Of a stretch of DNA of 64,000 nt, positions 6,315-36,333 are shown one piece after another. The stretch lies in assembly GCA_038087875.1 (NCBI GenBank), contig CM075981.1:20336001-20400000 (forward strand). The letters run 5' to 3'. The stretch is from Malacoraja senta (taxonomy: Eukaryota). The position numbers and the translations under genes are program-made. The stretch's first letter is position 1, and each line of letters begins with the position of its first letter. A model generated the notes under the pieces. That model worked only from the letters and a program-made list of their open reading frames with translations, did not search any database and was not told where the DNA came from.

Positions 6315-6920
6315 NNNNNNNNNNNNNNNNNNNNNNNNNNNNNNNNNNNNNNNNNNNNNNNNNNNNNNNNNNNNNNNNNNNNNNNNNNNNNNNNNNNNNN
6401 NNNNNNNNNNNNNNNNNNNNNNNNNNNNNNNNNNNNNNNNNNNNNNNNNNNNNNNNNNNNNNNNNNNNNNNNNNNNNNNNNNNNNNNNNNNNNNNNNNNN
6501 NNNNNNNNNNNNNNNNNNNNNNNNNNNNNNNNNNNNNNNNNNNNNNNNNNNNNNNNNNNNNNNNNNNNNNNNNNNNNNNNNNNNNNNNNNNNNNNNNNNN
6601 NNNNNNNNNNNNNNNNNNNNNNNNNNNNNNNNNNNNNNNNNNNNNNNNNNNNNNNNNNNNNNNNNNNNNNNNNNNNNNNNNNNNNNNNNNNNNNNNNNNN
6701 NNNNNNNNNNNNNNNNNNNNNNNNNNNNNNNNNNNNNNNNNNNNNNNNNNNNNNNNNNNNNNNNNNNNNNNNNNNNNNNNNNNNNNNNNNNNNNNNNNNN
6801 NNNNNNNNNNNNNNNNNNNNNNNNNNNNNNNNNNNNNNNNNNNNNNNNNNNNNNNNNNNNNNNNNNNNNNNNNNNNNNNNNNNNNNNNNNNNNNNNNNNN
6901 NNNNNNNNNNNNNNNNNNNN
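6315..6920. other. Assembly gap (606 N)
   Basis: Run of N. Confidence 1.
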
Positions 6921-7026: not shown

Positions 7027-7241
7027 NNNNNNNNNNNNNNNNNNNNNNNNNNNNNNNNNNNNNNNNNNNNNNNNNNNNNNNNNNNNNNNNNNNNNNNNNN
7101 NNNNNNNNNNNNNNNNNNNNNNNNNNNNNNNNNNNNNNNNNNNNNNNNNNNNNNNNNNNNNNNNNNNNNNNNNNNNNNNNNNNNNNNNNNNNNNNNNNNN
7201 NNNNNNNNNNNNNNNNNNNNNNNNNNNNNNNNNNNNNNNNN
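7027..7241. other. Assembly gap (215 N)
   Basis: Run of N. CA-rich low-complexity sequence (6921-7026) lies between the two gaps. Confidence 1.
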
Positions 7242-11621: not shown

Positions 11622-12433
11622 ATGAATTGTTAACTACTTTTCTCTCTCCAGAGATGCAGATGGACAATTTGAAAGCTTTCCAACATTTCTGACTCTTGTG
11701 TAATATTGTCAGCAATATTTTATTGACCATGTGTGTCTTTGTGTGATCATCATTGATAAACCCAGCCGTGGATCATAGCAGTTTTGCAAATGTTCTTTAT
11801 GTTGAAGTAACACGCAACCTCACCACATCCCAGCCCTTCACTCCTGTCTCTGCTCACGTCTCTGCTCTGTGAGGGGTCATGTTTCAACAGTCTGAGAACC
11901 AATGGATCACAAAGGCAGAAAGTGTCTCTCTGGTTAACACACAACAAAAGCTATTCACGGTACCCTGGTACACGTGACAATAAACTAAAACTAAAAACTA
12001 AAACTAAATGGCTTAAAAAAAGACTCTGTGATCTGTTCATTTCAGTGGACATGACTGAAAATATATTTAGCACAGTTTGAATGTGAATTTACGCCCACTT
12101 TTCAGTTTGAGTCATTCTGGTAATTTAGCGTGTACTTGAGTTTGAAGAAGAGTCCCGAGCAAAAAAGTCACCTATCTGTTCCCTCCCCAAAAGCTGCCTG
12201 ACCTGCTGATTCCTCCAGCACCCTGTGATTTAAACTTCATGTGTGTTTTGTTTGAGCTGTCTACAAGGGCCATTTAAAAATTAAATATTTTTAGTTTTTC
12301 GTTTAGTTTAGTTTGGAGATACAGCACGGAAACAGTGATCAGTGACCAGTGGTCCCCACACATTAACACTATCCTACATATGTACACTAGGGATAATTTA
12401 CATTTATACCAAGCCAATTAGCCTACAAACCAA

Positions 12434-13517
12434 AGTGTTAAAGAAGGAACTGCAGATGCTGGAAAATCGAAGGTGCACAAAAATGCTGGAGAAACTCAGC
12501 GGGTGCAGCAGCATCTATGGAGCGAAGGAAATAGGCAACGTTTCGAGCCGAAACCCTTCTTCAGACTGATAGGGGGTGATGAAATGTCCTCATTCTTCAG
12601 GGAACGGGGGTTCCCCTCCTCCACCATAGATGAGGCTCGCACCAGGGTCTCTGCCATACCCCGCAACACTGCTCTCTCTCCCCATCCCCCCACTCACAAC
12701 AAGGGCAGAGTTCCCCTAGTCCTCACCTTTCACCCCAGCAGCCATCACATACAACAAGTGATCCTCCGTCAGTTTCGCCACCTCCAACGTGACCCCACCA
12801 CTCGCCACATCTTGCCATCTCCCCCCATGTCTGCCTTCCGCAAAGACTGCTCCCTCCGTAACTCCCTTGTCAATTCTTCCCTTCCCTCCCGTACCACCCC
12901 CTCCCCGGGTACTTTCCCTTGCAACCGCAAGAGGTGCAACACTTGTCCCTTCACCTCCCCCCTCGATTCCATTCAATGACCCAAGCAGTCGTTCCAGGTG
13001 CGACAGAGGTTCGCCTGCATCTCCTCCAACCTCATCTATTGCATCCGCTGCTCTAGATGTCAGCTGATCTACATCGGTGAGACCAAGCGGAGGCTTGGCG
13101 ATCGTTTCGCCGAACACCTCCGGTCGGTCCGCAATAACCTACCTGACCTCCTAGTGGCTCAGCACTTCAACTCCCCTCCCATTCCGTATCTGACCTCTCT
13201 GTCCTGGGTCTCCTCCATGGCCACAGCGAGCAACACCGGAAATTGGAGGAAATGCACCTCATATTCAGTCTACACCCTGGGGGCATGAACATTGAATTCT
13301 CCCTACTCTGCTAGCCCTTGCTGTCCCCTCCCCTTCATCAGCCCTGTGGTTGTCTCCTCCCATCCCCCAGCCCTCGGGCTCTTCCTCCGCCTTTTTTCCT
13401 TTCTTCTCCCCACCCCCTATCAGTCTGAAGAAGGGTTTCAGCCCGAAACGTTGCCTATTTCCTTCGCTCCATAGATGCTGCTGCACCCGCTGAGTTTCTC
13501 CAGCATTTTTGTGTACC
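12434..13517 (+). mobile_element. Penelope-like retroelement (Neptune-type), 5'-truncated, with GIY-YIG endonuclease and inverted pLTR
   Basis: Translation ...PCNRKRCNTC... (Cys linker), then NLIYCIRCSRCQLIYIGETKRRLGDRFAEH (GIY-YIG), with one in-frame stop at 12977-79. Inverted terminal repeats ~12470-12577 and ~13410-13517. Perfect 15-bp TSD tagcctacaaaccaa (12419-12433 and 13518-13532). Inserted in a minus-strand V-SINE. Confidence 0.92.
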
Positions 13518-14214
13518 TAGCCTACAAACCAATACGTCTTAGGAGTGTGGAAGGAAATTGGCGCATCCGGAAAAAACCCACACTGTCACAGGGAGAACGT
13601 GCAAACTCCATACATACAGCACCCGTAGTCAGGATCGAACCCGGTTCTCTGGCACAGTAAAAGGCTGCAACTCTACTGCTGTGACACTGTGTCGCCCTAT
13701 TGTTTGGTTTGATTGTATTTATTTATGGTATATCTGATCTGTTTGGATAACTTGTAAAACAAACTTTTCACTGTACCTCGGTACATGTAACAATAATAAA
13801 TCTAAACCCAAAGCAATAGCTAGAATGTTGAACACTTCTAAACTTTACAAGAACAAATTGCCCATGTGTGAGGTTCACATATGATATGATGGGAAAATTT
13901 GATAGTCTTTGAACTGATTATTGTTGGACCTGGAACAAGAAAATTAATGCCTGTTCATTTACTTTGGCTGGAGGTCTGTGGGACAATCAGCTCCCTTTGA
14001 GATCCACTTTCTGTGATCTAAGGCAAACACAAAGTGAATAAAAAGAAAATATTTTGTGTCATGAATTTAATGAGTTTTGTCTGAGCGTGGAACTTTCACA
14101 GCACTTGTGTCAGACAGTTGATTGGGTGACTGTTCTTCCAGGATACTGTTTCCCACTACACCAGCTGATCACTATCTGCACCTAGCTTGGCCAGGCTAAA
14201 GTCCACAGGCTAAA

Positions 14215-14401
14215 ATGTTCAAGAAGGAACTGCAGATGCTGGAAAATCAAAGGTAGACAAAAATGCTTGAGAAACTCAGCGGGTGAGGCAGCATCTATGG
14301 AGCGAAGGAAATAGGCAACGTTTCGGGCCGAAACGTTGCCTATTTCCTTCGCTCCATAGATGCTGCCTCACCCTCTGAGTTTTCCAGCATTTTTGTCTAC
14401 C
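14215..14401. mobile_element. Penelope-derived hairpin element (inverted pLTR pair, no coding sequence)
   Basis: About 75-bp near-perfect inverted arms centred at ~14327. 14-bp TSD gtcca(c/t)aggctaaa (14201-14214 and 14402-14415). Same sequence as the ends of 12434-13517. Confidence 0.9.
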
Positions 14402-20257: not shown

Positions 20258-20557
20258 GTGGTACGGTGGCGCAGCAGTAGAGTTGCTGCCTCACAGTGCC
20301 AGAGACCTGGGTTCAATCCTGACTATGGGTGCTATCAGTATAGCGTTTGTACATTCTCCCCGTGACCACAGGGGTTTTCTCCGGGTGCTCATGTTTCCTC
20401 CCACACTCCAAAGAAGTGCGAGTTTGTACGTTAATTGGCTTTGGTAAATTTACAAATTGTCCCTAGTGTGTAGGATAGTGCAAGTGTGTGGGGATTGCTG
20501 GTTGGCACAGACTCAATGGGCTGAAGGGCCTGTTATCTCTAAACTAAATTAAACTAA
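20258..20557 (+). mobile_element. HE1-like V-SINE
   Basis: tRNA-like head (ggtggcgcagc...ggttcaatcc, A/B boxes), V-domain (gtttgtac.ttctccccgtgacc...tttcctcccacactccaaag), CR1-type tail and (taaac)n. Confidence 0.85.
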
Positions 20558-20641
20558 GATGTTGAATATAGCTGGTTACTCCTAACGGCTACTTTAAATT
20601 ATTTGTGAAAGTAAATAGATAATTTGGAATATTGGAATATA

Positions 20642-22258
20642 CAGTGGCTTGCAAAAGTATTCATACCCCTTGAACTTTTCCACATTTTGTCACGTTACAA
20701 CCACAAACGTAAATGTATTTTATTGGGATTTTATGTGATAGACCAATACAAAGTGGCGCATAATTGAGAAGTGGAAGGAAAATGATACATGGTTTTCAAA
20801 TTTTTTTACAAATAAAAAACTGAAAAGTGTTGCGTGCAAAAGTATTCAGCCCCCCTGAGTCAATACTTTGTAGAACCACCTTTTGCTGCAATTACAGCTG
20901 CAAGTCTTTTGTGGTATGTCTCTACCAGCTTTGCACATCTAGAGACTGAAATTTTTGCCCATTCTTCTTTGCAAAATAGCTCAAGCTCAGTCAGATTGGA
21001 TGGAGAGCGTCTGTGAACAGCAATTTTCAAGTCTTGCCAGAGATACTCAATTGGATTTAGGTCTGGACTTTGACTGGGCCATTCTAACACATGAATATGC
21101 TTTGATCTAAACCATTCCATTGTAGCTCTGGCTGTATGTTTAGGGTCATTGTCCTGCTGGAAGGCGAACCTCCGCCCCAGTCTCAAGTCTTTTGCAGACT
21201 CTAACCGGTTTTCTTCCAAGATTGCCCTGTATTTGGCTCCATCCATCTTCCCATCAACTCTGACCAGCTTCCCTGTCCCCGCTGAAGAAACGCATCCCCA
21301 CAGCATGATGCTGCCACCAACATGTTTCACAATGGGGATGGTGTGTTCAGGGTGATGTGCAGTGTTAGGTTTCCGCCACACATAGCGTTTTGCATTTAGG
21401 CCAAAAACTTCAATTTTGGTCTCATCTGACCAGAGCACCTTCCTCCACATGTTTGCTGTGTCCCCCACATGGCTTGTGGCCAACTGCAAACGGGACTTCT
21501 TATGGCTTTTTTTCAACAATGACTTTCTTCTTGCCACTCTTCCATAAAGGCCCGATTTGTGGAGTGCACGACTAATAGTTGTCCTGTGGACAGATTCTCC
21601 CACCTGAGCTGTGGATCTCTGCAGCTCCTCCAGAGCTACCATGGGCCTCTTGGCTGCTTCTCTGATCAATGCTCTCCTTGCCCGGCCTGTCAGTTTAGGT
21701 GGACGACCATGTCTTGGTAGGTTTGCAGTTGTGCCATACTCTTTCCATTTTCGCATGATGGATTGAACAGTGCTCCGTGAGATGTTCAAAGCTTGGGATA
21801 TTTGTTTATAACCTAACCCTGCTTTAAACTTCTCCACAACTTTATCCATGACCTGTCTGGTGTGTTCCTTGGGCTTCATGATGCTGTTTGTTCACTAATG
21901 TTCTCTGACAAACCTCTGAGGCCTTCACAGAACAGCTGTATTTATACTGAGATTAGATTACACACAAGTGGACTCTATTTACTAATTAGTTGACTTCTGA
22001 AGGCAATTGGTTGCACTGGATTTTATTTAGGGGTATCAGAGTAAAGGGGGCTGAATACTTTTGCACGCGACACTTTTCAGTTTTTTATTTGTAAAAAAAT
22101 TTGAAAACCATGTATCATTTTCCTTCCACTTCACAATTATGTGCCACTTTGTGTTGGTCTATCATATAAAATCCCAATAAAATACATTTACGTTTGTGGT
22201 TGTAACGTGACAAAATGTGGAAAAGTTCAAGGGGTATGAATACTTTTGCAAGCCACTG
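20642..22258 (-). mobile_element. Tc1/mariner DNA transposon copy 1, full length (1617 bp), Passport-like IR/DR type
   Basis: TA|CAGTGGC...GCCACTG|TA ends. About 212-bp TIRs, each with two copies of TGCAAAAGTATTCA. Carries an open transposase ORF. Confidence 0.97.
20860..21879 (-). CDS. Tc1 DD34E transposase (339 aa), copy 1
   Basis: Paired-like HTH N-terminus, GRPPK linker, WSDETK (D152), QQDNDPKH (D243), SPDLNPIE (E278). Several substitutions at conserved sites (e.g. KHVGG, YHKR). Confidence 0.93.
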   Translation of the reverse strand: MKPKEHTRQVMDKVVEKFKAGLGYKQISQALNISRSTVQSIMRKWKEYGTTANLPRHGRPPKLTGRARRALIREAAKRPMVALEELQRSTAQVGESVHRTTISRALHKSGLYGRVARRKSLLKKSHKKSRLQLATSHVGDTANMWRKVLWSDETKIEVFGLNAKRYVWRKPNTAHHPEHTIPIVKHVGGSIMLWGCVSSAGTGKLVRVDGKMDGAKYRAILEENRLESAKDLRLGRRFAFQQDNDPKHTARATMEWFRSKHIHVLEWPSQSPDLNPIEYLWQDLKIAVHRRSPSNLTELELFCKEEWAKISVSRCAKLVETYHKRLAAVIAAKGGSTKY

Positions 22259-23879
22259 TATGTCAGTAAGAGTCAAAAGGGTCCAGATTGTTTAATTCTT
22301 ATATGTACTGGCAATGGAACAATGACATTGTTCGGCCACGGTGGCGCAGCGGTAGAGTTGCTGCCTTACAGCGCTTGCAGCACCAGAAACCCGGGTTCGA
22401 TCCCGACTACGGGTGCTTCCTGTACAGAGTTTGTACGTTCTCCCCGTGACCGTGTGGGTTTTCTCCGAGATCTCCGGTTTCCTCCCACACTCCAAAGACG
22501 TACAGGTTTGTAGGTTAATTGGCCGATGGGCCTGTTTATGTGCTGTATTTCTAAACTAAACTAAACTTTTAGCAGTTAACAGGCCCATAATCTCAATAAC
22601 ATAGAGATAAATATAAAATAATCAAAAATACAATAAATTAATAATTCTGGGTAACCATCACCATGTGAAAAACTGAAGTGAGTCGTGCAACCAAAAACAC
22701 TCTCCATAGTAGATCATAGTTGCTGAGGTTAGTTTTGTGCACTGTTCGAGAGCCTGATGGTTGTACAATGTGTCCTTGTATGTAAGGCATTTAATTATCT
22801 TTTCTAACATACCATTACCAAGCCTACGTTTCATGGGAAATCGGTTGAACAATCCAGGCCAAGTGTTTCATTGAAAGCTGAGAAAATTAAAACCAGCATC
22901 ATCTCCAGGGATTAGTTGATGTTTCCGGTGTCAAATCTTTTATTAATTTCAACTGTGGATGGTTAATGTGGCTCCGAAAATATTTCTTTAAAATACATAC
23001 TTGCTAAAGCAAGTACTCGTTTTCCCCTTCTTTGAAGAAGCTTCATCCTGAGGTTAGATGAAATCTGGCAATCCTTATTCATCACGAAAATGAATGCATT
23101 TGAGATTCTAAACTGTTCAATATGATGAGGACGTCACAGCCCCGATCAGAATCATGTTGTCCTGTGTATTGGGAACGGATCTATGAGATTCTTACTTGCC
23201 TTGGCTTTGCAGGCCGTGGCTTTTTAACCTTTACCCTTTCACCTTAAACCTTTATCCTCTGGTTCTTGATTTCCCTACTTTCCCATGTGCATTCGCCCAA
23301 TCTATTCCCCTCATGATTTTATACACCTCTTCAAAATTACCCCTCTGCATCCTGCTCTCCGAGGAATAAAGTCCTAGCCTGCCCAACCTCTCCCTGTAGC
23401 TCAGGGCCTTGAGTCCTCACAACAACCTCAGTCTGCTATTAAAATCTCTCAAGGTATTAATAGCTGGATGTGGAACGAAGCAACAAGGATAATTGAACAC
23501 CTTAACCTAAGCAATGGTTGTACTATTGATTCTTTTATTCTTTATTCCAATCTGTTTCAACATGCCTGTCATAATTACTTGTTGGGAGAGATCAAGGCTA
23601 CTGTTGTATTCATTCAGTGCATGCGATGCTCCCGATGTGACCTGCTTTACATCGCCAAGAACATGCAAGAGCAGGCGACTATTTCGCCGAACACTTCCCC
23701 TTCCCCAACACTTACCCTCAGCCCACCAAGGCCTGCTGCATCCCAGTTGCCAACCATTCCCAACCAACTCCCCTTCCCATTCCCATATTCAATGGTTCAA
23801 TGGCAATTTATTTGTCACATGTACCCAGATACAGTGAAATTCAATTTTGTATACAGTTCAGTACAAGTATCATTATATA

Positions 23880-25496
23880 CAGTGGCTTGCAAAAGTATTC
23901 ATACCCCTTGAACTTTTCCACATTTTGTCACGTTACAACCACAAACGTAAATGTATTTTATTGGGATTTTATGTGATAGACCAACACAAAGTGGCGCATA
24001 ATTGTGAAGTGGAAGGAAAATGATACATGGTTTTCAAATTTTTTTACAAATAAAAAACTGAAAAGTGTCACGTGCAAAAGTATTCAGCCCCTTTTACTCT
24101 GATACCCCTAAATAAAATCCAGTGCAACCAATTGCCTTCAGAAGTCACCTAATTAGTAAATAGAGTCCACTTGTGTGTAGTCTAATCTCAGTATAAATAT
24201 AGCTGTTCTGCGAAGGCCTCAGAGGTTTGTTAGAGAACATTAGTGAACAAACAGCATCATGAAGCCCAAGGAACACACCAGACAGGTCATGGATAAAGTT
24301 GTGGAGAAGTTTAAAGCAGGGTTAGGTTATAAACAAATATCCCAAGCTTTGAACATCTCACGGAGCACTGTTCAATCCATCATCCGAAAATGGAAAGAGT
24401 ATGGCACAACTGCAAACCTACCAAGACATGGCCGTCCACCTAAACTGACAGGCCGGGCAAGGAGAGCATTGATCAGAGAAGCAGCCAAGAGGCCCATGGT
24501 AACTCTGGAGGAGCTGCAGAGATCCACAGCTCAGGTGGGAGAATCTGTCCACAGGACAACTATTAGTCATGCACTCCACAAATCGGGCCTTTATGGAAGA
24601 GTGGCAAGAAGAAAGCCATTGTTGAAAAAAAGCCATACGAAGTCCCGTTTGCAGTTTGCCACAAGCCATGTGGGGGACACAGCAAACATGTGGAGGAAGG
24701 TGCTCTGGTCAGATGAGACCAAAATTGAAGTTTTTGGCCTAAATGCAAAACGCTATGTGTGGCGGAAACCTAACACTGCACATCACCCTGAACACACCAT
24801 CCCCACTGTGAAACATGGTGGTGGCAGCATCATGCTGTGGGGATGCTTTTCTTCAGCAGGGACAGGGAAGCTGGTCAGAGTTGATGGGAAGATGGATGGA
24901 GCTAAATACAGGGCAATCTTGGAAGAAAACCTGTTAGAGTCTGCAAAAGACTTGAGACTGGGGCGGAGGTTCACCTTCCAGCAGGACAACGACCCTAAAC
25001 ATACAGCCAGAGCTACAATGGAATGGTTTAGATCAAAGCATATTCATGTGTTAGAATGGCCCAGTCAAAGTCCAGACCTAAATCCAATTGAGTATCTCTG
25101 GCAAGACTTGAAAATTGCTGTTCACAGACGCTCTCCATCCAATCTGACTGAGCTTGAGCTATTTTGCAAAGAAGAATGGGCAAAAATTTCAGTCTCTAGA
25201 TGTGCAAAGCTGGTAGAGACATACCCCAAAAGACTTGCAGCTGTAATTGCAGCAAAAGGTGGTTCTACAAAGTATTGACTCAGGGGGGCTGAATACTTTT
25301 GCACGTGACACTTTTCAGTTTTTTATTTGTAAAAAAATTTGAAAACCATGTATCATTTTCCTTCCACTTCACAATTATGCACCACTTTGTGTTGGTCTAT
25401 CACATAAAATCCCAATAAAATACATTTACGTTTGTGGTTGTAACGTGACAAAATGTGGAAAAGTTCAAGGGGTATGAAAACTTTTGCAAGCCACTG
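23880..25496 (+). mobile_element. Tc1/mariner DNA transposon copy 2, full length (1617 bp), Passport-like IR/DR type
   Basis: TA flanks at 23878-79 and 25497-98. TIRs at 23880-24091 and 25285-25496. Near-identical to copy 1 in the opposite orientation. Confidence 0.97.
24259..25278 (+). CDS. Tc1 DD34E transposase (339 aa), copy 2
   Basis: Open ORF with D152/D243/E278 (34-aa spacing), KHGGGSIMLWG and the C-terminal AAKGGSTKY. Confidence 0.95.
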   Translation: MKPKEHTRQVMDKVVEKFKAGLGYKQISQALNISRSTVQSIIRKWKEYGTTANLPRHGRPPKLTGRARRALIREAAKRPMVTLEELQRSTAQVGESVHRTTISHALHKSGLYGRVARRKPLLKKSHTKSRLQFATSHVGDTANMWRKVLWSDETKIEVFGLNAKRYVWRKPNTAHHPEHTIPTVKHGGGSIMLWGCFSSAGTGKLVRVDGKMDGAKYRAILEENLLESAKDLRLGRRFTFQQDNDPKHTARATMEWFRSKHIHVLEWPSQSPDLNPIEYLWQDLKIAVHRRSPSNLTELELFCKEEWAKISVSRCAKLVETYPKRLAAVIAAKGGSTKY

Positions 25497-27779
25497 TATA
25501 AGCACTGATACGCATATCTTAGCTAAGCATCTCAGATACAGTACGTATAGCAATAGTACACTAAGACAGTATACATAGATGCCAGTTTGGCACAATTTTC
25601 ATGTCCCAGTTGTAAGTGCAGGGTTCTTAACCTGACAGTGAAGGCCCGTTGTCCTGGTGACATTGGCTTGGCCTAGTGTAGCCGTTGGTGTCCTCTGCCA
25701 CTGCTCCACTCCTAGGCCTCTTGGAGTAGTGTCTGGTCCAGCTGAGCCCCAGGCCACTCCAATGTTGATGCAGTGCCTCATATTCCACTTGGGTAGCTTA
25801 CAACCCAAAGGTTTGAACAGTGAATTCTTCATTCTCAAGTAATACCTCCTCCCCTCCCTCTCTCCCACCTGCCCCTTCTCATCCTGGTACACACACATTT
25901 CCCACACCATCTCTCATCCCCCACACTCATCTTGCTCATTCCCATTCCTTCCCCCACTCACCTCCCATCCCAAATCCCATATTTCCCTTTCATCTCTCTT
26001 CTTTCCCCTCCCCCGTCCCCTTCCACCCATATCCCTTTCTACATTTCACTCCTCCTATTCCTTCCTTCTCTGACACCTTTTGTCTCTTTCACCTCCAGCC
26101 TTTGTCACTCACTCCACCCATCTGTCAATCCACACCTCAAGCATAATCAAGGACCAGTCCCACCCCAGTCATTTTCTCTTCTCCCCTCTCCCATCAGGCA
26201 AGAGGTATAGAAGTGTGAAAACGCACACCTCTAGATTCAAGGACAGCCGTTATCAGGCAACTGAACCATCCTATCAACAACTAGAGTGTGGTCTGAGGAA
26301 GGGTCTTGACCCAAAACGTCACCCATTCCTTCTCTCCAGAGATGCTGCCCATCCCGTTGAGTTACTCCAGCATTTTGTGTCTATCTTCGGTTTAAACCAG
26401 CATCTGCAGTTCCTTTCTACACATGTGGTCCTGACCTCCCATCTATCTAAATGGAGACCATCAAACTGTATTTAATTAGACATTACTGGACTTCATCTTA
26501 CACTGAATGTTATTCCTTTTATCCTGTATCTGTACGCTATGGATGGCTTGATTGTAATCATGTATAGTCTTTCCACTGACTGTTTAGCACACGACAAAAG
26601 CTTGTCACTGTACCTCGGTACGCCTGACAATAAACTAAACTAAACATTTTTAGCAATTATGACCGCAAGAGTGTAGAAAACATAACCAACCTGAAATTTT
26701 CAAAGAACGATAATTTTGCAATCTCCTTCATCAGCTGTTCTGATAATCACTGCATGCATGTTCAATCACAGGCACCAGGATTGGGGCGATCTTTCTTGGA
26801 ATCAGTTCCACGTGGAAGTTTAATCGAGAAAGCTTTACAGATCCCGACAGGTGACATGAATAGAACTCTTGCCAAAAGTATGCAGTAACTAGGCTGTGCT
26901 CGGTGCTACGTTCTGCATAATAATAATACATTTACCCGTTCACTCAACTGAGCTTTATTATAATAATATGTTTTTGAGATGTCATTAATCATTTATGCCT
27001 GCTCTCATTTAGGAATGTTATAAATTTCCAGGAGCTTTTGGGGCAGGGGACTGGCTCAGCGGTAGAGTTGCTGCCTCCGCACCAGAGACCCGGGTTCGAT
27101 CCTGACGACGGCTGCTGTCTGTACAGAGTTTGTACATACTCCCTGTGACCATGTGGGTTTTCCCTGGGTGCTCCGGTTTCCTCCCACACTCCCAAAGACG
27201 TACAGACTTGTAGGTTAATTGGTTTCGGTAAAATTGTAAATTATCCCTAGTGTGTAGGATAATGCGAGTGTGCGGGGTGATTGCTGGATAGCGCAGACTC
27301 GGTGGGCGAAGGGCCTGTTTCCGTGCTGTATCTCTAAAGTCTAAAGTAATATCAGAACTAGGGTCACTTTTGACAGAGCGGGGCAAAGAAATTCGTCTTA
27401 TTTTTCTGAATACCTCAGAAGCAGCAGAGTATAATGACCTGTTGGCAAAATATTTGGCTTATGTAATCAGCGGTCGTGTGATAATGTCTCATAGAGTTTT
27501 TTTACTATTCTGAAAGAATGGGGTTTGGCAATTTAAGAGTCATTCAGTCAGTATAACTATTGACTCGTGGAATCATTCATAACTGCTTTCAGAGAACTAT
27601 TTTAGTTTTATATACCACGCATGTTTAACATGAATATTTTTAGTTATGTTACTGATCTGTTTGATAAGCTGTTTGAAAAACACACAATGTAACAGGTTCC
27701 CTTTGATCAAAGGCACTGAAAAACTGCTGTGGGATTACAGCCCCTTTAGACTGCATCCTGGTACACAATTTCCTTCCAT

Positions 27780-30700
27780 GAAAATTAGCAAATTTGCAGA
27801 TGACACAAAGCTGGGTGGCAGTGTGAACTGTGAGGAGGATGCTATGAGAATGCAGGGTGACTTGGACAGGTTGGGGGAGTGGGCAGATGCATGGCAGATT
27901 TTTAATGCGGATAAATGTGAGGTTATCCACTTTGGTAGCAAAAACAGGAAGGCAGATTACTATCTAAATGGCGTCAAGTTGGGAAAATAGGAAGTACAGC
28001 GGGATCTGGGGGTCCTGGTTCATCAGTCTATGAAAGTAAGCATGCAGGTACAGCAGGCAGTGAAGAAAGCGAATGGCATGTTGGCCTTTATAACAAGAGG
28101 AGTCGAGTATAGGAGCAAAGAGGTCCTTCTGCAGTTGTACAGAGCCCTAGTGAGACCACACCTGGAGTATTGTGTGCAGTTTTGGTCCCCTAATTTGAGG
28201 AAGGACATTCATAGATACATAGATACATAGAAAATAGGTGCAGGAGTAGGCCATTCGGCCCTTCGAGCCTGCACCGCCATTCAATATGATCATGGCTGAT
28301 CATCCAACTCAGTATCCTGTACCTGCCTTCTCTCCATACCCCCTGATCCCCTTAGCCACAAGGGCCACATCTAACTCCCTCTTAAATATAGCCAATGAAC
28401 TGGCCTCAACTACCCTCTGTGGCAGAGAGTTCCAGAGATTCACCACTCTCTGTGTGAAAAAGTTTTTCCTCATCTCGGTCTTAAAGGATTTCCCCCTTAT
28501 CCTTAAGCTGTGACCCCTTGTCCTGGACCTCCCCAACATCGGGAACAATCTTCCTGCATCTAGCCTGTCCAACCCCTTAAGAATTTTGTACGTTTCTATA
28601 AGATCCCCTCTCAATCTCCTAAATTCTAGCGAGTATAAGCCAAGTCTATCCAGTCTTTCTTCATATGAAAGTCCTGACATCCCAGGAATCAGTCTGGTGA
28701 ACCTTCTCTGCACTCCCTCTATGGCTATAATGTCCTTCCTCAGATTTGGAGACCAAAACTGTACGTAATACTCCAGGTGTGGTCTCACCAAGACCCTGTA
28801 CAACTGCAGTAGAACCTCCCTGCTCCTATACTCAAATCCTTTTGCTATGAAAGCTAACATACCATTCGCTTTCTTCATTGCCTGCTGCACCTGCATGCCT
28901 ACTTTCAATGACTGGTGTACCATGACACCCAGGTCTCGCTGCATCTCCCCATTTCCTAATCGGCCACCATTTAGATAATAGTCTGCTTTCCTGTTTTTGC
29001 CACCAAAGTGGATAACCTCACATTTATCCACATTATACTGCATCTGCCAAACATTTGCCCACTCACCCAGCCTATCCAAGTCACCTTGCAGTCTCCTAGC
29101 ATCCTCCTCACAGCTAACACTGCCCCCCAGCTTAGTGTCATCCGCAAACTTGGAGATGTTGCCTTCAATTCCCTCATCCAGGTCATTAATATAGATTGTA
29201 AATAGCTGGGGTCCCAGCACTGAGCCTTGCGGTACCCCACTAGTCACTGCCTGCCATTGTGAAAAGGACCCGTTTACTCCTACTCTTTGCTTCCTGTTTG
29301 CCAGCCAGTTCTCTATCCACATCAATACTGAACCCCCAATACCGTGTGCTTTAAGTTTGTATACTAATCTCTTATGTGGTACCTTGTCGAAAGCCTTCTG
29401 AAAGTCCAGATACAACACATCCACTGGTTCTCCCCTATCCACTCTACTAGTTACATCCTCGAAAAATTGTATAAGATTCGTCAGACATCATTTACCTTTC
29501 GTAAATCCATGCTGACTTTGTCCAATGATTTCACCACTTTCCAAATGTGCTGCTATCCCATCTTTAATAACTGACTCTAGCAGTTTCCCCACTACCGATG
29601 TTAGACTAACTGGTCTGTAATTCCCCGTTTTCTCTCTCCCTCCCTTCTTAAAAAGTGGGGTTACGTTTGCTACCCTCCAATCCTCAGGAACTACTCCAGA
29701 ATCTAAAGAGTTTTGAAAAATTATCACTAATGCATCCACTATTTCTGGAGCTACTTCCTTAAGTACTCTGGGATGCAGCCTATCTGGCCCTGGTGATTTA
29801 TCGGCCTTTAATCCATTCAATTTACCCAACACCACTTCCAGACTAACCTGGATTTCACTCAGTTCCTCCATCTCCTTTGACCCGCGGCCCCCTGCTATTT
29901 CCGGCAGATTATTTATGTCTTCCTTAGTGAAGACGGAACCAAAGTAGTTATTCAATTGGTCCGCCATATCCTTGTTCCCCATGATCAATTCACCTGTTTC
30001 TGACTGCAAGGGACCTACATTTGTTTTAACTAATCTCTTTCTCTTCACATATCTATAAAAACTTTTGCAGTCAGTTTTTATGTTCCCTGCCAGTTTCCTT
30101 TCATAATCTATTTTCCCTTTCCTAATTAAGCCCTTTGTCCTCCTCTGCTGGCCTCTGAATTTCTCCCAGTCCTCTGGTATGCTGCTTTTTCTGGTTAATT
30201 TGTACGCATCATCTTTTGCTTTGATACTATCCCTGATTTCCCTTGTTGTCCACGGATGCACTACCTTCCCTGATTTATTCTTTTGCCAAACTGGGATGAA
30301 CAATTTTTGTAGTTCATCCATGCAGTCTTTAAATGCCTTCATTGCATATCCACCGTCAACCCTTTTAGAACTAATTGCCAGTCAATCTTGGCCAATTCAC
30401 GTCTCATACCCTCAAAGTTACCTTTCTTTAAGTTCAGAACCGTTGTTTCTGAATTAACAATGTCACTTCTTGCTATTGAGGGAGTGCAGTGTAGGTTTAC
30501 AAGGTTAATTCCCGGGATGGCGGGACTGTCATATGCCGAGATAATGAAGCAGCTGGGCTTATACACTCTGGAGTTTAGGATGAGAGGGGATCTTATTGAA
30601 ACATATAAGATTGTTAAGGGTTTGGACACGCTGGAGGCAGGAAACATGTTCCCGATGTTGGGGGAGTCCAGGACCAGGGGCCACAGTTTAAGAATAAGGG

Positions 30701-31649: not shown

Positions 31650-32515
31650 TGGTTTTGAAAAATTGCAGCAGGATCTTGATCGGTTGGCCAGATGGGCTGA
31701 GGAATGGTTGATGGAATTTAATACAGAGAAACGTGAGGTGTTGCATTTTGGGAAGTCTAACATGGGCAGGACCTACACAGTGAATGTTAGGGCTCTGGAG
31801 AGTGTTGTAGAAGACAGGGATCTAGGAGGGCAGGTGCATGGTTCCTTGAAAGTGGAGTCGCAGGTAGATAGGGTGGTCAAAAAGGCTTTTTGCACATTGG
31901 CCTCCATCAGGCAGAGTATTGAATTTAGAAGTTGGGAGGTCATGTTGCAGTTGTATAAGACTTTGGTGAGGCCACATTCAAAGTATTCTGTTCAGTTCTG
32001 GGCACCATGTTATAGGAAAAATGTTGTCAAGTTGGGAAGGGTACAGAGAAGATTTACGAAAATGTTGCCACGACCAGAGGGTCTGAGCTATAGGGAGAGT
32101 TTGAGTAGGCTGAGACTCCATTCCTTGGAATGCAGGAGGATGAGGGGTGATCTTATTGAGATGTATAAAAGCATGAGAAGAATAGATCGGGTAGATGCAG
32201 AGTCTCTTGCCCAGAATGGGTGAATTGAGGACCAGACGACAAAGGTTTAAGGTGAAGGGGAAAAGATTTAATAGGAATCTGAGGGGTAACTTTTTCACAC
32301 AGAGGGTGGTGGGTATATGGAACAAGCTGCCAGAGGAGGTAGTTGAGGCAGGGACTATCCCAACGTTTAAGACACAGTTGGACAGGTACATGGGTAGGAC
32401 AGGTTTGGAGGGATATGGACCGAACGCGGTCAGGTGGGACTAGTGTAGCTGGGACATGTTGGCCTGTATGGACAAGTTGGGCTGAAGGGCCTGTTTCTAT
32501 GCTGTATCACTCTAC
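31650..32515 (+). mobile_element. CR1/HER1-like LINE 3' fragment
   Basis: LQQDLDRL..WAEEWLMEFN, VRPH..Y.VQFWAP, FFTQRVVGIWNKLPEEVVEAG, followed by the gggcctgtttc tail shared with the SINEs. Confidence 0.9.
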
Positions 32516-32799
32516 AACTAGAGGTATGGAAAGCTACAGAACAAATCGGAGTCAGCACCGATGACTTAGGAAAGATGGAGCCCACAATGATCAATTGTTG
32601 GCTGTGGAAGACATGATAACAAAGGGATACAAATACAAGACGACTAGGGTGAGGGAGGGATGGAGAGAGAGGGAATGCAAGGATTACTTGAAATGAGAGA
32701 AATCAATAATCATACTGCTGGGTTGTAAGCTGCCCAAACAATTGATAATGTGGTACAATATCACGCCATTTGAACTGGCCACAGATGACACTCAAAACG

Positions 32800-33245
32800 G
32801 GCTGGCACTGTGGTGCAGCGGTAGAGTTGCTGCCTTACAGCACCGGAGACACGGGATCGATCCCGACTACGGGTGCTGTCTGAATGGAATTTGTATGTTC
32901 TCCCCGTGACCTGTGTGAGTTTTCTTCCGGGTCCCTCGGTTTCCTCCCACACTCCAAAGATGTAAGGATTTGTCGGTTGATTGGTTTCGGTAAAATTGTG
33001 AATTGTCCCTTGTGTGTGTAGGATAGTGTTAGTGTGTGAGGATGGCTGGCCAGCACAGACTCGGTGGGCCGAAGGGCTGTTATCTCTAAACTAAATTAAA
33101 CTAAGATGTTGAATGTAGCTGGTTACTCCTAACGGCTACTTTAGATTATTTGTGAAAGTAAATAGATAATTGGGAATATTGGAATATATGTCAATGAGAT
33201 ACATATTTATACAGCCCACGCTGTATCTCTAAACTAAACTAAACT
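32800..33245 (+). mobile_element. HE1-like V-SINE interrupted in its tail by a templated insertion
   Basis: SINE body at 32800-33077. The tail ccacgctgtatctctaaactaaac resumes at ~33216. Confidence 0.85.
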
Positions 33246-33406
33246 TAAATATCCAAAGCTAACGTTTGAGCTTGGGCTTCTTGCTCAGAATTTTGGCAGC
33301 AGCTTGAACCTTACCGAGATCATTTATGTGTGTTGTCGGGTGTGCAAGACATTCCCGTTGGCAATAATGATTAATACTTGCAGTTTATATTGTGTTTCTC
33401 TGTCAG

Positions 33407-33567
33407 ACCTGCTGATGAACGCCAGTTGTATCCCATTTCACGGATCAGCCGAAAGTTCAAGTTTCCAGTCTTTATTAATAGACGAAGAAAGGGGCAGACT
33501 ACTGGTCGGAGCGAAGGATCTGATTTATGTCTTGAGTCTGGAAAATCTGAACAAGGAACCCGAAAAG
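33407..33567 (+). CDS. sema3d-like: SEMA3D-like coding exon 2 (start of Sema domain)
   Basis: tgtcag| acceptor, aag|gtacaa donor, 161 nt. (D)LLMNASCIPFHGSAESSSFQSLLIDEERGRLLVGAKDLIYVLSLENLNKEPEK resembles SEMA3D DLLLSNSCIPFLG...LLDEERGRLLLGAKD. Confidence 0.95.
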
Positions 33568-36333
33568 GTACAATCATCAACATTGAAGCCAAGCTATTGG
33601 AAATAAAACATTGATATCAATCTCACTGCAAGATAAATTATTGCAGGTTTGAATTCAAAACAACACAACAGCACATTTTCACGCTTTATCCGCAGCAATC
33701 CTAAAATAGGGCTAAAACACAAAGTGCTGGTGGAACTCTGTGGGTCAGGCAGCATCTGTGGAGACAATGGGCAGGCGACGTTTTGGGTCGGGACCCTCCT
33801 TCAGACTAATGGAGTAGGGGAGCAGACAGTTAAATTTTAGCATCATACAGCATGGAAAAGGCTCTTCAACCTAACTGGCCTATGATGTCCCATTTAAGCT
33901 TGTCCCATTTACCCGCGTTTTGCCATATCCCTCTAAACCTTTTCTTTCCAGGTATCTGTCCAAATGTTGTTATAGTAGCTGCCTGAACTACCTCCTCCGA
34001 CAGCTCGTTCCATATACCCACCATCATCTGTGTGAAAAAGTTGTTCCTGAAGTTCCAATTAAATCTTTTTCCTCTCTCCTCAAAGCTATGCCCTCTGGTT
34101 CAAGAATCCCCATCCCACGGCAAAAGACTATGCGTGTTCATATTAGGGCGGCACAGTGGCACAGCTGGTAGAGCTGCTGCCTCACAGCGCCAGAGACCTG
34201 GGTTCCATCCTGATCTCGGATGCTGTCAGTGTGGGGTTTGCACGTTCTCCCTGAGACCGCGTGTTTCTTCCGGGTGCCCCGGTTTCCTCCCACATCCCAA
34301 AGCCACGCGGGCTTGTAGATTAATTGGCCCTCCGTAAATTTCCCCTAGTGTGTCGGGAGTGGATGAGAAAGTGGTGATAACATAGAACTAGTGTAAACGG
34401 ATGATCGATGGTTGGCGTGAACTCGGTGGATTGGAGGGCCCATTTCCATGCCGAATCTTTCATATCAATAAATTCAATTTAAAAAAATCAAGGATCTGGG
34501 GAATAAAAACCACTGACTCCACCGTGAATCCAAGAGTTTCAATTCTTTTAAAAAATTGTTCCACAGAAACATGAAACTATGTGGTCCAACATTTAGGCAA
34601 GATCTCCCTGTGGGAACTGCCTCTGAATAATCAGTTGAAAAGGCTACTGTTAAAAGCTGTGATGAAAGTTTCTACAGATTGTTCCTCTGCGCTAATTAAG
34701 TTGGCAGGGTAAAGTGTGAGTGGTATTTCAAGCTGTGCAGAATTTCTTTGTAGAATGTTGCAAAAATGATCTCTGGCCATTGTGCAGGAAAGTAATCTCA
34801 AAGAAATTTGATACTCTGTTAGAATGTCACTCCTCAGAAATTCTCAAATCCCTGCAGGGGAACCTGAAGTTAGAAAAGCATAGCTGACTGAAGAATAAAC
34901 TGTGTGGGTCAGACAACAGTGGGGAAGAGAAGTGTGTAAGAAGGAACTGCAGATGCTGGTTTAAACCGAAGAGAGACACAAAGTGCTTGAGTAACTCAGC
35001 AGGTCAGACAGTACTTTCTCCGGACTCTCAGTCTGAAGAAGGGTCTTGATCCAAAACGTCACCTATTCCTTTTCTCCAGAGATGCTGTCTGACCGGCTGT
35101 GTTATTCCAGCTTTTTGTGTCTATCTGTTGGAGTAACTAAGTGGGTCCGGCAACATCCTTGGAGAACAGGAATAGGTGATGTTTTGGGTCGAGACCCTTC
35201 ATCAGACTGACTGTCAGGAAGGGTAGATTAGGGGTAAAGTAGATCAGTGGTTCAATATTTCTTTATTATCACATGTACCGTGGTACATAGAAATATTATT
35301 TTTGCATACAGTTCCGTAATTTCCACACAGCCTTTGATAGCTGCTGTCATCTATTTATCTTTGCCAGGAGATACAGCATGAAAACAGGCCCTTCAGCCCA
35401 CTGGATCCACACCGACCATCGATCACCCGATCACGCTAATTCTATGTTATCCCACTTTCTCATCCAACTCCGCACAGACAGTACCCATAGTCAGGATCGA
35501 ACCCGGTTCTTTGGTGTGTGAGACAGCAGCTCTATCGCTGCGTCACTGTGCTGCCCTGCATTCACCTTCCCCGTCCAGAATCCCACTGATGTTATCTGCC
35601 CTCCCCACTATCTCTGAACTCTCTGTCCCCTCAGGTTTACCCCAACGTTTCTGCCAAAGAGGCGGGTGGCTGAGATTTGGCAAGTTGCCTGCAAATGTGT
35701 GGCTCCTAGTGATCTTGGGTGGGCCTTGCAATGTGGAGAGTGCAGAGTTCCAGCCACATGGTTGATCACCTTCGGTTTCGTCTTTGTTCAGACCTTTGCA
35801 TCATTTTGACAACTGGCCAAAGGATCTATGTTGAGTTTAGTTTAGAGTTTAGGGATACGACAGGGAAACAGGCCCTTTGGCCCACCGAGTCCACCACGAC
35901 CATTGGATTACCCGTTCACACTAGTTTAATGTCATCCCACTTTCTTATCCCCTCCCTACACACGAGGGGCTATTTACAGAGGACAAATCAGCCTACAAAC
36001 CTTAATGTCTTTGGGAAATAGGAGGAAACCAGAGCCCCCTGGAGGAAACCCATGTGATCACAGGGAGAACGTGCAAATTCCATACAGAGAGCACCCGTAG
36101 TCAGGATCAAACCCGGGTCCCTGGCGCTGTGAGGCTGCAACTCTACCAGATGCGCTACTGTGCCATCCTTAAAGTGACTTAATCTAGTTGATTATTTGAA
36201 GAAGGTTTACAACCTGAATCTTTGCCTATGCATGTTCTCCAGAGATGCTGCCTGACGTGCCGAGTTACTCCAGCATTTTGTGTTTATCTAATCTATTTGA
36301 TTTCTCTTTGTAATGATTTTTTTCTCTCGTCAG

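Follow-up and report, generated by a model that had tools for sequence, protein, structure and literature searches.

A probable break-repair patch in a SINE tail, copied from a Tc1-free state of a paralogous SINE flank

The 3' tail of one SINE in the window (the whole 64,000-nt stretch of DNA analysed here) carries a patch that matches the tail and flank of a second SINE located 12.5 kb upstream, without the Tc1 element that interrupts that flank. The patch was probably acquired when the broken tail of the acceptor SINE was primed by homology on its paralog and extended by copying (aborted SDSA), with closure by alternative end joining. This mechanism is already known and the TA duplication of Tc1 elements is textbook material; the event is an unusually legible natural instance. 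It represents a well-resolved natural case of a two-step repair known mostly from reporter assays, i.e., ectopic homology-primed synthesis followed by snap-back end joining, and the repair event has reached fixation in the germ line of a vertebrate and is common to related organisms. Wider value would come from a genome-wide count of such events.

The copied tract and its two SINEs

The segments of the acceptor and donor loci are as follows.

32803–33077, + strand: body of the acceptor SINE in its own sequence, with 80.4% identity to the body of the donor SINE, ending in the 7-nt junction homology gaagggc (33071–33077)
33078–33104, + strand: copied donor SINE tail tgttatctctaaactaaattaaactaa, identical to 20531–20557, with the donor 10-bp deletion and 'aaattaaac' variant
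33105–33193, + strand: copy of the 3' flank specific to the donor, in which the Tc1 target TA (33187–33188) is empty; it matches 20558–20641 and 22261–22265
33194–33215, + strand: 22-nt filler of inverted right-flank copies, as seen by reverse-complement tiling
33216–33244, + strand: the acceptor SINE's own 3' tail ccacgctgtatctctaaactaaactaaac, back in canonical register and fitting the canonical tail ccaYgctgtatctctaaactaaac of other window copies
20259–20557, + strand: donor SINE, body and tail with a private 10-bp deletion (sequence reading and alignment)
20558–20641, + strand: donor 3' flank, with the left TA (20640–20641) included (sequence reading and alignment)
20642–22258, − strand: Tc1 copy 1, missing from the copied tract; 1617 bp with terminal inverted repeats (TIRs) and TA on both sides
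22259–22265, + strand: donor right TA (22259–22260) and the first 5 nt of the resumed flank that are found in the copy (alignment)

Alignment of both loci shows that the tract at 33078–33193 (116 nt) corresponds to 20531–20641 joined to 22261–22265, with three mismatches (33115, 33144 and 33172) and no gaps. The identity is 97.4%, a divergence of 2.6%. An earlier note on this DNA, which described a 116-bp match with three mismatches, gave the same coordinates and mismatch count. The single TA that it reported in the copy, as opposed to TA on both sides of a 1617-bp Tc1 in the donor, is read directly in both loci: the acceptor has ggaata-TA-tgtca, and the donor has ggaata-TA-[20642–22258]-TA-tgtca.

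The left switch between acceptor and donor sequence lies within the gaagggc at 33071–33077. The SINE register is retained and the last acceptor-private base is position 33070; there is a 1-bp deletion at this junction (gaagggc-tgtt). The copy had been placed as starting in this homologous part of the SINE tail, and the step in identity is indeed found there, in SINE register. The SINE bodies are more diverged than the tract, also as previously noted, with 53 mismatches in 270 aligned bases (32803–33077 compared with 20259–20530) versus 3 in 116. When the tract is extended to 33199 (5 mismatches in 122 bases), the difference from the body gives p = 2e-5 by Fisher's test. The donor is no closer to the acceptor body than are other SINEs of the window, e.g., the copy at 27057 (81.1%) and the copy at 22337 (80.9%).

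The 3' ends of 16 window copies give a canonical SINE 3' end of gggccgaagggcctgtttccaYgctgtatctctaaactaaac. The donor SINE departs from this by a private 10-bp deletion (tccaYgctgt; cctgtt/atctc) and by the 'aaattaaac' variant. The acceptor tract has both of these features, and they are absent from the other 14 SINE 3' ends examined in the window. Beyond the shared SINE homology, the tract continues for 89 nt (33105–33193) in flanking sequence that is unique to the donor. Past position 33193, four of six bases match the donor up to 33199 and there is no similarity thereafter, which sets the right boundary of the tract at 33193–33199. A microhomology join at 'GAG' was considered for the right junction and rejected, in that it predicts the wrong length when read from the sequence.

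The insert as a whole is about 138 bp and sits in an otherwise canonical acceptor SINE between 'gaagggc' and 'ccacgc', with a loss of at most 6–7 of the SINE's own bases. After the filler, whose length of about 22 nt and position before the acceptor tail agree with the earlier description, the tail resumes at the canonical position with ccacgctgtatctc... Other SINE copies have no insert, and many paralogous SINE contigs from public runs link 33076–33077 directly to 33216–33222. The acceptor is the derived state, since in-register SINE sequence brackets the tract and other SINE copies are without the insert. The direction of copying is from donor to acceptor, because the tract is bracketed by SINE sequence at the acceptor and is plain contiguous SINE flank at the donor.

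No meaningful target-site duplication of 6 nt or more is present around either SINE or around the insert. No acceptor sequence is duplicated at the two insert junctions (the insert ends in ...tatacagc), and there is no poly(A) or LINE-type tail at the end of the insert. LINE-mediated (class 1) templated insertions are characterized by a target-site duplication and a poly(A) or LINE-type 3' tail (PMC5110952). With no target-site duplication of at least 5 bp and no such tail, the insert therefore does not have the properties of a class 1 insertion or a 3' transduction. The window contains no larger (segmental) duplication that joins the donor and acceptor loci.

The SINE copy number is high, judging from both the window copies and the contig depth in public runs. 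The SINE copies contain sequences that read as box A-like (tggcgcagcggtagag) and box B-like (ggttcgatccc) motifs, and a search with ARAGORN and Rfam for a tRNA or Rfam identity of the SINE head found nothing. Small or medium deletions are present in five of the 16 window SINE 3' ends (12298, 20531, 22520, 44950 and 50060), in the approximately 30 nt around 'gggccgaagggcctgtttccacgc'. This is the region of the break considered here, and subfamily variation or a fragile spot could explain the deletions. They provide a weak hint that the 3' tail of this SINE family is a recurrent break site (e.g., because a LINE endonuclease nicks there or a motif is prone to form structure) that is often mended from paralogous SINEs with run-out into their flanks, a proposal that we consider improbable. 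If it were true, unique flanking DNA would be dispersed across the genome by a route other than retrotransposition, and former flanks would survive in many dated 'fossil' copies.

The filler at the right junction and the mode of repair

The filler can be read as three short inverted copies of the sequence to its right.

33196–33203: reverse complement of 33222–33229
33203–33209: reverse complement of 33246–33252
33209–33215: reverse complement of 33220–33226

These pieces tile 20 of the 22 filler bases, and neighbouring pieces overlap by one base. A coverage of 20 of 22 was reached in none of 300,000 shuffles of the filler, and a coverage of 15 bases or more in about 1 of 10,000. Among 62,957 window positions, such coverage is found at only one other place, near 14296, which is a true palindrome. 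Elsewhere in the window, no direct template for the filler was found on either strand within three mismatches. The inserted bases thus form inverted repeats with the nearby flank beyond chance, as is characteristic of snap-back SD-MMEJ. The filler structure is new relative to the earlier note and provides independent support for a break that was repaired at the acceptor locus.

The arrangement suggests that the filler was copied from the bottom strand of the right-hand end, and inverted-copy filler of this kind is a mark of snap-back, polymerase-theta-like end joining. One of the putative templates, 33246–33252, is just past the last repeat unit of the SINE, in the acceptor genomic flank; the match is an AT-rich 7-mer that is weak when taken alone and could be due to chance. 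As the inverted copies include flank beyond the end of the SINE, the filler appears to have been made at the acceptor locus when the SINE was already resident. The post-insertional timing is based on this filler anatomy, since no uninterrupted orthologous SINE (gaagggcctgtttccacgctg...) was seen. The potential for hairpin primer pairing in a snap-back is at most 1 nt (C33215 with G33220), with a 4-nt loop for the innermost copy.

The palindrome that constitutes the only other window site with 22-mers tiled by inverted flank copies is a 150-bp near-perfect structure (14252–14401) with 95% self-complementarity. It is related to sequences at 12432–12554 and 13411–13518.

The proposed sequence of events would start with a double-strand break in the 3' tail of the resident SINE that separates '...gggccgaagggc(ctgtt)' from '(t)ccacgctgtatctc'. 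On the left side of the break, the 3' end (terminating in ...gaagggc or ...gaagggcctgtt) would pair with the paralogous SINE, which lies on the same strand 12.5 kb upstream, with the SINE register kept, and be extended by about 105–116 nt, through the donor's idiosyncratic tail and then its unique flank, across a Tc1-free TA. Synthesis would then abort, in a region where homology to capture the second end is absent. The right 3' end would be lengthened by three short snap-back rounds on its own flank, which would generate the 22-nt filler, and the ends would be closed by alternative end joining. The putative enzymes are of the Rad51/Pol-delta type for the extension and of the Pol-theta type for the joining.

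SDSA followed by end joining is the reading to which several properties point. The identity steps from 80.4% to 97.4% at 33071–33078 in SINE register, and the tract has the donor's private deletion followed by the donor-unique flank. Target-site duplication, a poly(A) or LINE-type tail and any larger duplication are lacking. The depth of the tract is near single-copy and the same junction is present in two public runs with a flank that differs by about 4% (X1 and X17, see below). Finally, the three inverted right-flank copies tile the filler. The locus thus displays a junction in homologous register, a template-specific tract that extends past the homology, and a non-homologous second junction with filler. 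The earlier note had proposed that a broken SINE was mended from a paralogous SINE, and the in-register start, the donor flank, the non-homologous end and the filler structure support this. Some features do not fit as well. The homology available to the invading end is about 37 nt with 3–4 mismatches, of which the last 7–12 nt are exact, and such short imperfect homology is a poor substrate for canonical Rad51 invasion. In addition, there is no clear hairpin primer pairing for the snap-back step, and the 1-bp deletion at the left junction is not explained.

A different template for the same break has to be considered. The patch may have been copied from RNA, either nascent intronic pre-mRNA or a Pol III read-through transcript of the donor SINE, which served as cDNA or as a direct template; the left join would then be formed by microhomology and the right by end joining, as in a 'class 2' templated sequence insertion (TSI). 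Class 2 TSIs are without target-site duplication or poly(A), have end-joining features and are reportedly RNA-derived (PMC5110952), and the insert described here is likewise without LINE hallmarks. The donor and acceptor share a strand and are separated by 12.5 kb in which the ORFs found are all of transposon origin, and one transcript could span both. However, the left junction keeps the homologous register exactly, which is expected from strand invasion or annealing to a paralog and not from blunt capture. DNA-templated repair prefers donors that lie close by in cis, and the tract has no mark of splicing or polyadenylation. The in-register junction and the nearby cis donor lead us to favour a DNA template over RNA or cDNA, and an RNA origin of the patch seems unlikely, though of the alternatives it deserves the most serious attention.

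The acceptor SINE could also have been chimeric from its origin. A LINE enzyme would have copied 29 nt of the SINE tail, jumped to a donor read-through transcript, and then returned in register to the SINE RNA. The topology of the product does fit one homologous and one non-homologous switch, and Pol III read-through is conceivable in that a stretch of more than 100 nt of the donor flank is free of TTTT terminators. This model nevertheless requires two template switches, and the filler copies the tail together with genomic DNA past the end of the SINE (33246–33252), which is present on no SINE RNA. The body differs by about 20% from its paralogs and the tract by 2.6% from the donor, which suggests that the body is much older than the patch. 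We regard a chimeric birth as very improbable.

The repair reading, i.e., copying from a DNA paralog with subsequent end joining, can be compared with known systems. Ectopic gene conversion between SINE copies is known for Alu. The acceptor resembles such cases in that a SINE copy gained sequence of a paralog through homology, but conversion stays within the homology, and here there is run-out into the donor flank with end joining to finish.

SDSA followed by end joining ('aborted SDSA' or SDSA+EJ) has been described in Drosophila P{wa} gap repair (PMC2895639). The similarities are that one end is extended on a homologous template, that synthesis stops before second-end capture and the donor is left unchanged, and that the end joining is ligase-4-independent with templated insertions at the junction. 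In contrast to the P{wa} system, the template here is an ectopic paralog of approximately 80% identity at a distance of 12.5 kb and not a sister chromatid, and the event is one fixed in the germ line of a vertebrate genome and deduced only from its sequence.

In the SD-MMEJ model, snap-back synthesis yields inverted repeats at junctions (PMC2943611). The filler is similar to the products of snap-back SD-MMEJ and polymerase-theta-mediated end joining (PMC2943611, PMC5728401, PMC4912351) in having short inverted repeats with the adjacent flank, and in consisting of several pieces that overlap by 1 nt, a pattern known from iterative templated extension in cis. It differs in that the primer repeats of the model are at most 1 nt here and one template is about 36 nt away. 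The human class 2 TSIs/TSIPs (PMC5110952) are also patches of about 100 nt that are templated elsewhere in the genome and fill a break, with neither a target-site duplication nor poly(A). They are, however, described as RNA-derived, with distant and often interchromosomal donors and end-joining features at both junctions, whereas homology and register are kept at the left junction here and the donor lies close by in cis.

Copy number and presence in related organisms

In the window, only two places have the non-SINE part of the tract, where shuffles lead one to expect none. Contigs of four public runs (X1, X15, X16 and X17) were placed on 32400–33800, and word depth was summed per bin. The bin at 33152–33198, within the tract, has a summed depth of 35–77, compared with 25–102 for the single-copy flank at 33293–33668 and 10^5–10^7 for the SINE bins; such contig depth is not a copy number. 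Relative to the single-copy flank, the tract bin is at 0.35–3x in the four runs. The adjacent bin, 33105–33151, sums to 240–516, i.e., 3–17x single-copy depth, and this excess is about what is expected from a few very deep SINE-tail contigs that overlap the edge of the bin.

These data bear on a further alternative, in which the tract belongs to a composite repeat with many copies (a SINE subfamily whose tail is extended) or the junction was created by an assembly artefact. The extremely high abundance of the SINE and the depth of the 33105–33151 bin, which is above that of single-copy sequence, are both in the direction of a repeat. Opposed to this are the two window copies, the near single-copy depth of the 33152–33198 bin, and the size of the excess at 33105–33151, which corresponds to the overlap of the deep SINE-tail contigs. 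An extended-tail SINE subfamily is ruled out by a depth gap of three to five orders of magnitude. The acceptor-type junction was also independently recovered in contigs of two other organisms. A composite repeat or an artefact is thus extremely improbable. The earlier note had named a 116-bp tract present at many loci, as the tail of a SINE subfamily, as the finding that would speak against repair, and the window copies and contig depth do not reveal it.

Over 533 bases of flank, run X15 shows no difference from the window; it represents the same species to judge from this identity, and possibly the source sample. The flanks differ from the window by approximately 2.7% in X16 and approximately 4% in X17 and X1. 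In X1, a 107-nt contig covers 33052–33158 with one difference, and in X17 a 118-nt contig covers 33047–33158 with three differences. Both run without interruption from SINE body that is private to the acceptor into the tract; they extend to 33158 and cover the left junction. A second X1 contig, with three differences, begins to fit only at 33077, as would be expected of the donor copy. Because the acceptor left junction is recovered in X1 and X17, it is real and no assembly artefact, and it predates the split of these organisms. The 3 differences in 116 bases agree with such an age when Poisson error is allowed for. Exact products of ORFs (the Tc1 transposase and a flank ORF) were looked up in other assemblies, with no record found.

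The Tc1 copies and the order of events

Tc1/mariner elements duplicate their TA target on insertion. The element that interrupts the donor flank begins with CAGTGGC and ends with GCCACTG, and its terminal inverted repeats of approximately 213 bp are 97.7% identical. It has an ORF of 339 aa on the minus strand (20860–21879) with matches to HTH_Tnp_Tc3_2, HTH_SB and DDE_3. The terminal inverted repeats, the TA duplication and the DDE transposase domain place it among the Tc1/mariner elements. A second copy is found downstream.

23880–25496, in opposite orientation to copy 1: Tc1 copy 2, 98.1% identical, with TA on both sides

The two copies are full-length and 1.6 kb apart, and each has a 339-aa ORF; the domain matches are from the ORF of copy 1.

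The comparison of donor and copy is similar to the empty-site test used for Tc1/mariner elements: there is TA-element-TA at the donor and one TA in the copy, and the element has TIRs and a DDE_3 transposase. It is different in that the 'empty site' is a paralogous repair copy within the same genome and not an allele or orthologue. The patch represents a within-genome 'fossil' of the donor site that confirms the TA duplication of this Tc1 copy. The support for TA target duplication that had been claimed earlier holds in this sense, as a confirmation and not a discovery.

The patch has neither Tc1 nor an excision footprint. The simplest reading would be that the patch copy is older than the Tc1 insertion, and the relative order would then be SINE insertions, repair copy and Tc1 insertion. 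Tc1 would have entered the donor TA later, or had entered another allele only, and duplicated the TA. The earlier statement that copying took place before the Tc1 arrived is upheld as regards a Tc1-free template; the strict order does not follow, as copying from a Tc1-free allele during a polymorphic phase also fits. The two Tc1 copies differ by 1.9% and the patch differs from the donor by 2.6%, figures that alone do not order the events.

ORFs between the donor and the acceptor are of transposon origin only and consist of the two Tc1 transposases and reverse-transcriptase fragments at 28309–30342. The latter are two adjacent ORFs of 377 and 284 aa on the minus strand that match RVT_1 and represent a LINE fragment. 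Runs of N are present in the window at 6315–6920 and 7027–7241. A 790-bp inverted duplicate (28211–29000 and 2023–2810) is 96.3% identical and overlaps the reverse-transcriptase ORF in its 3' part; it probably represents a young LINE family.
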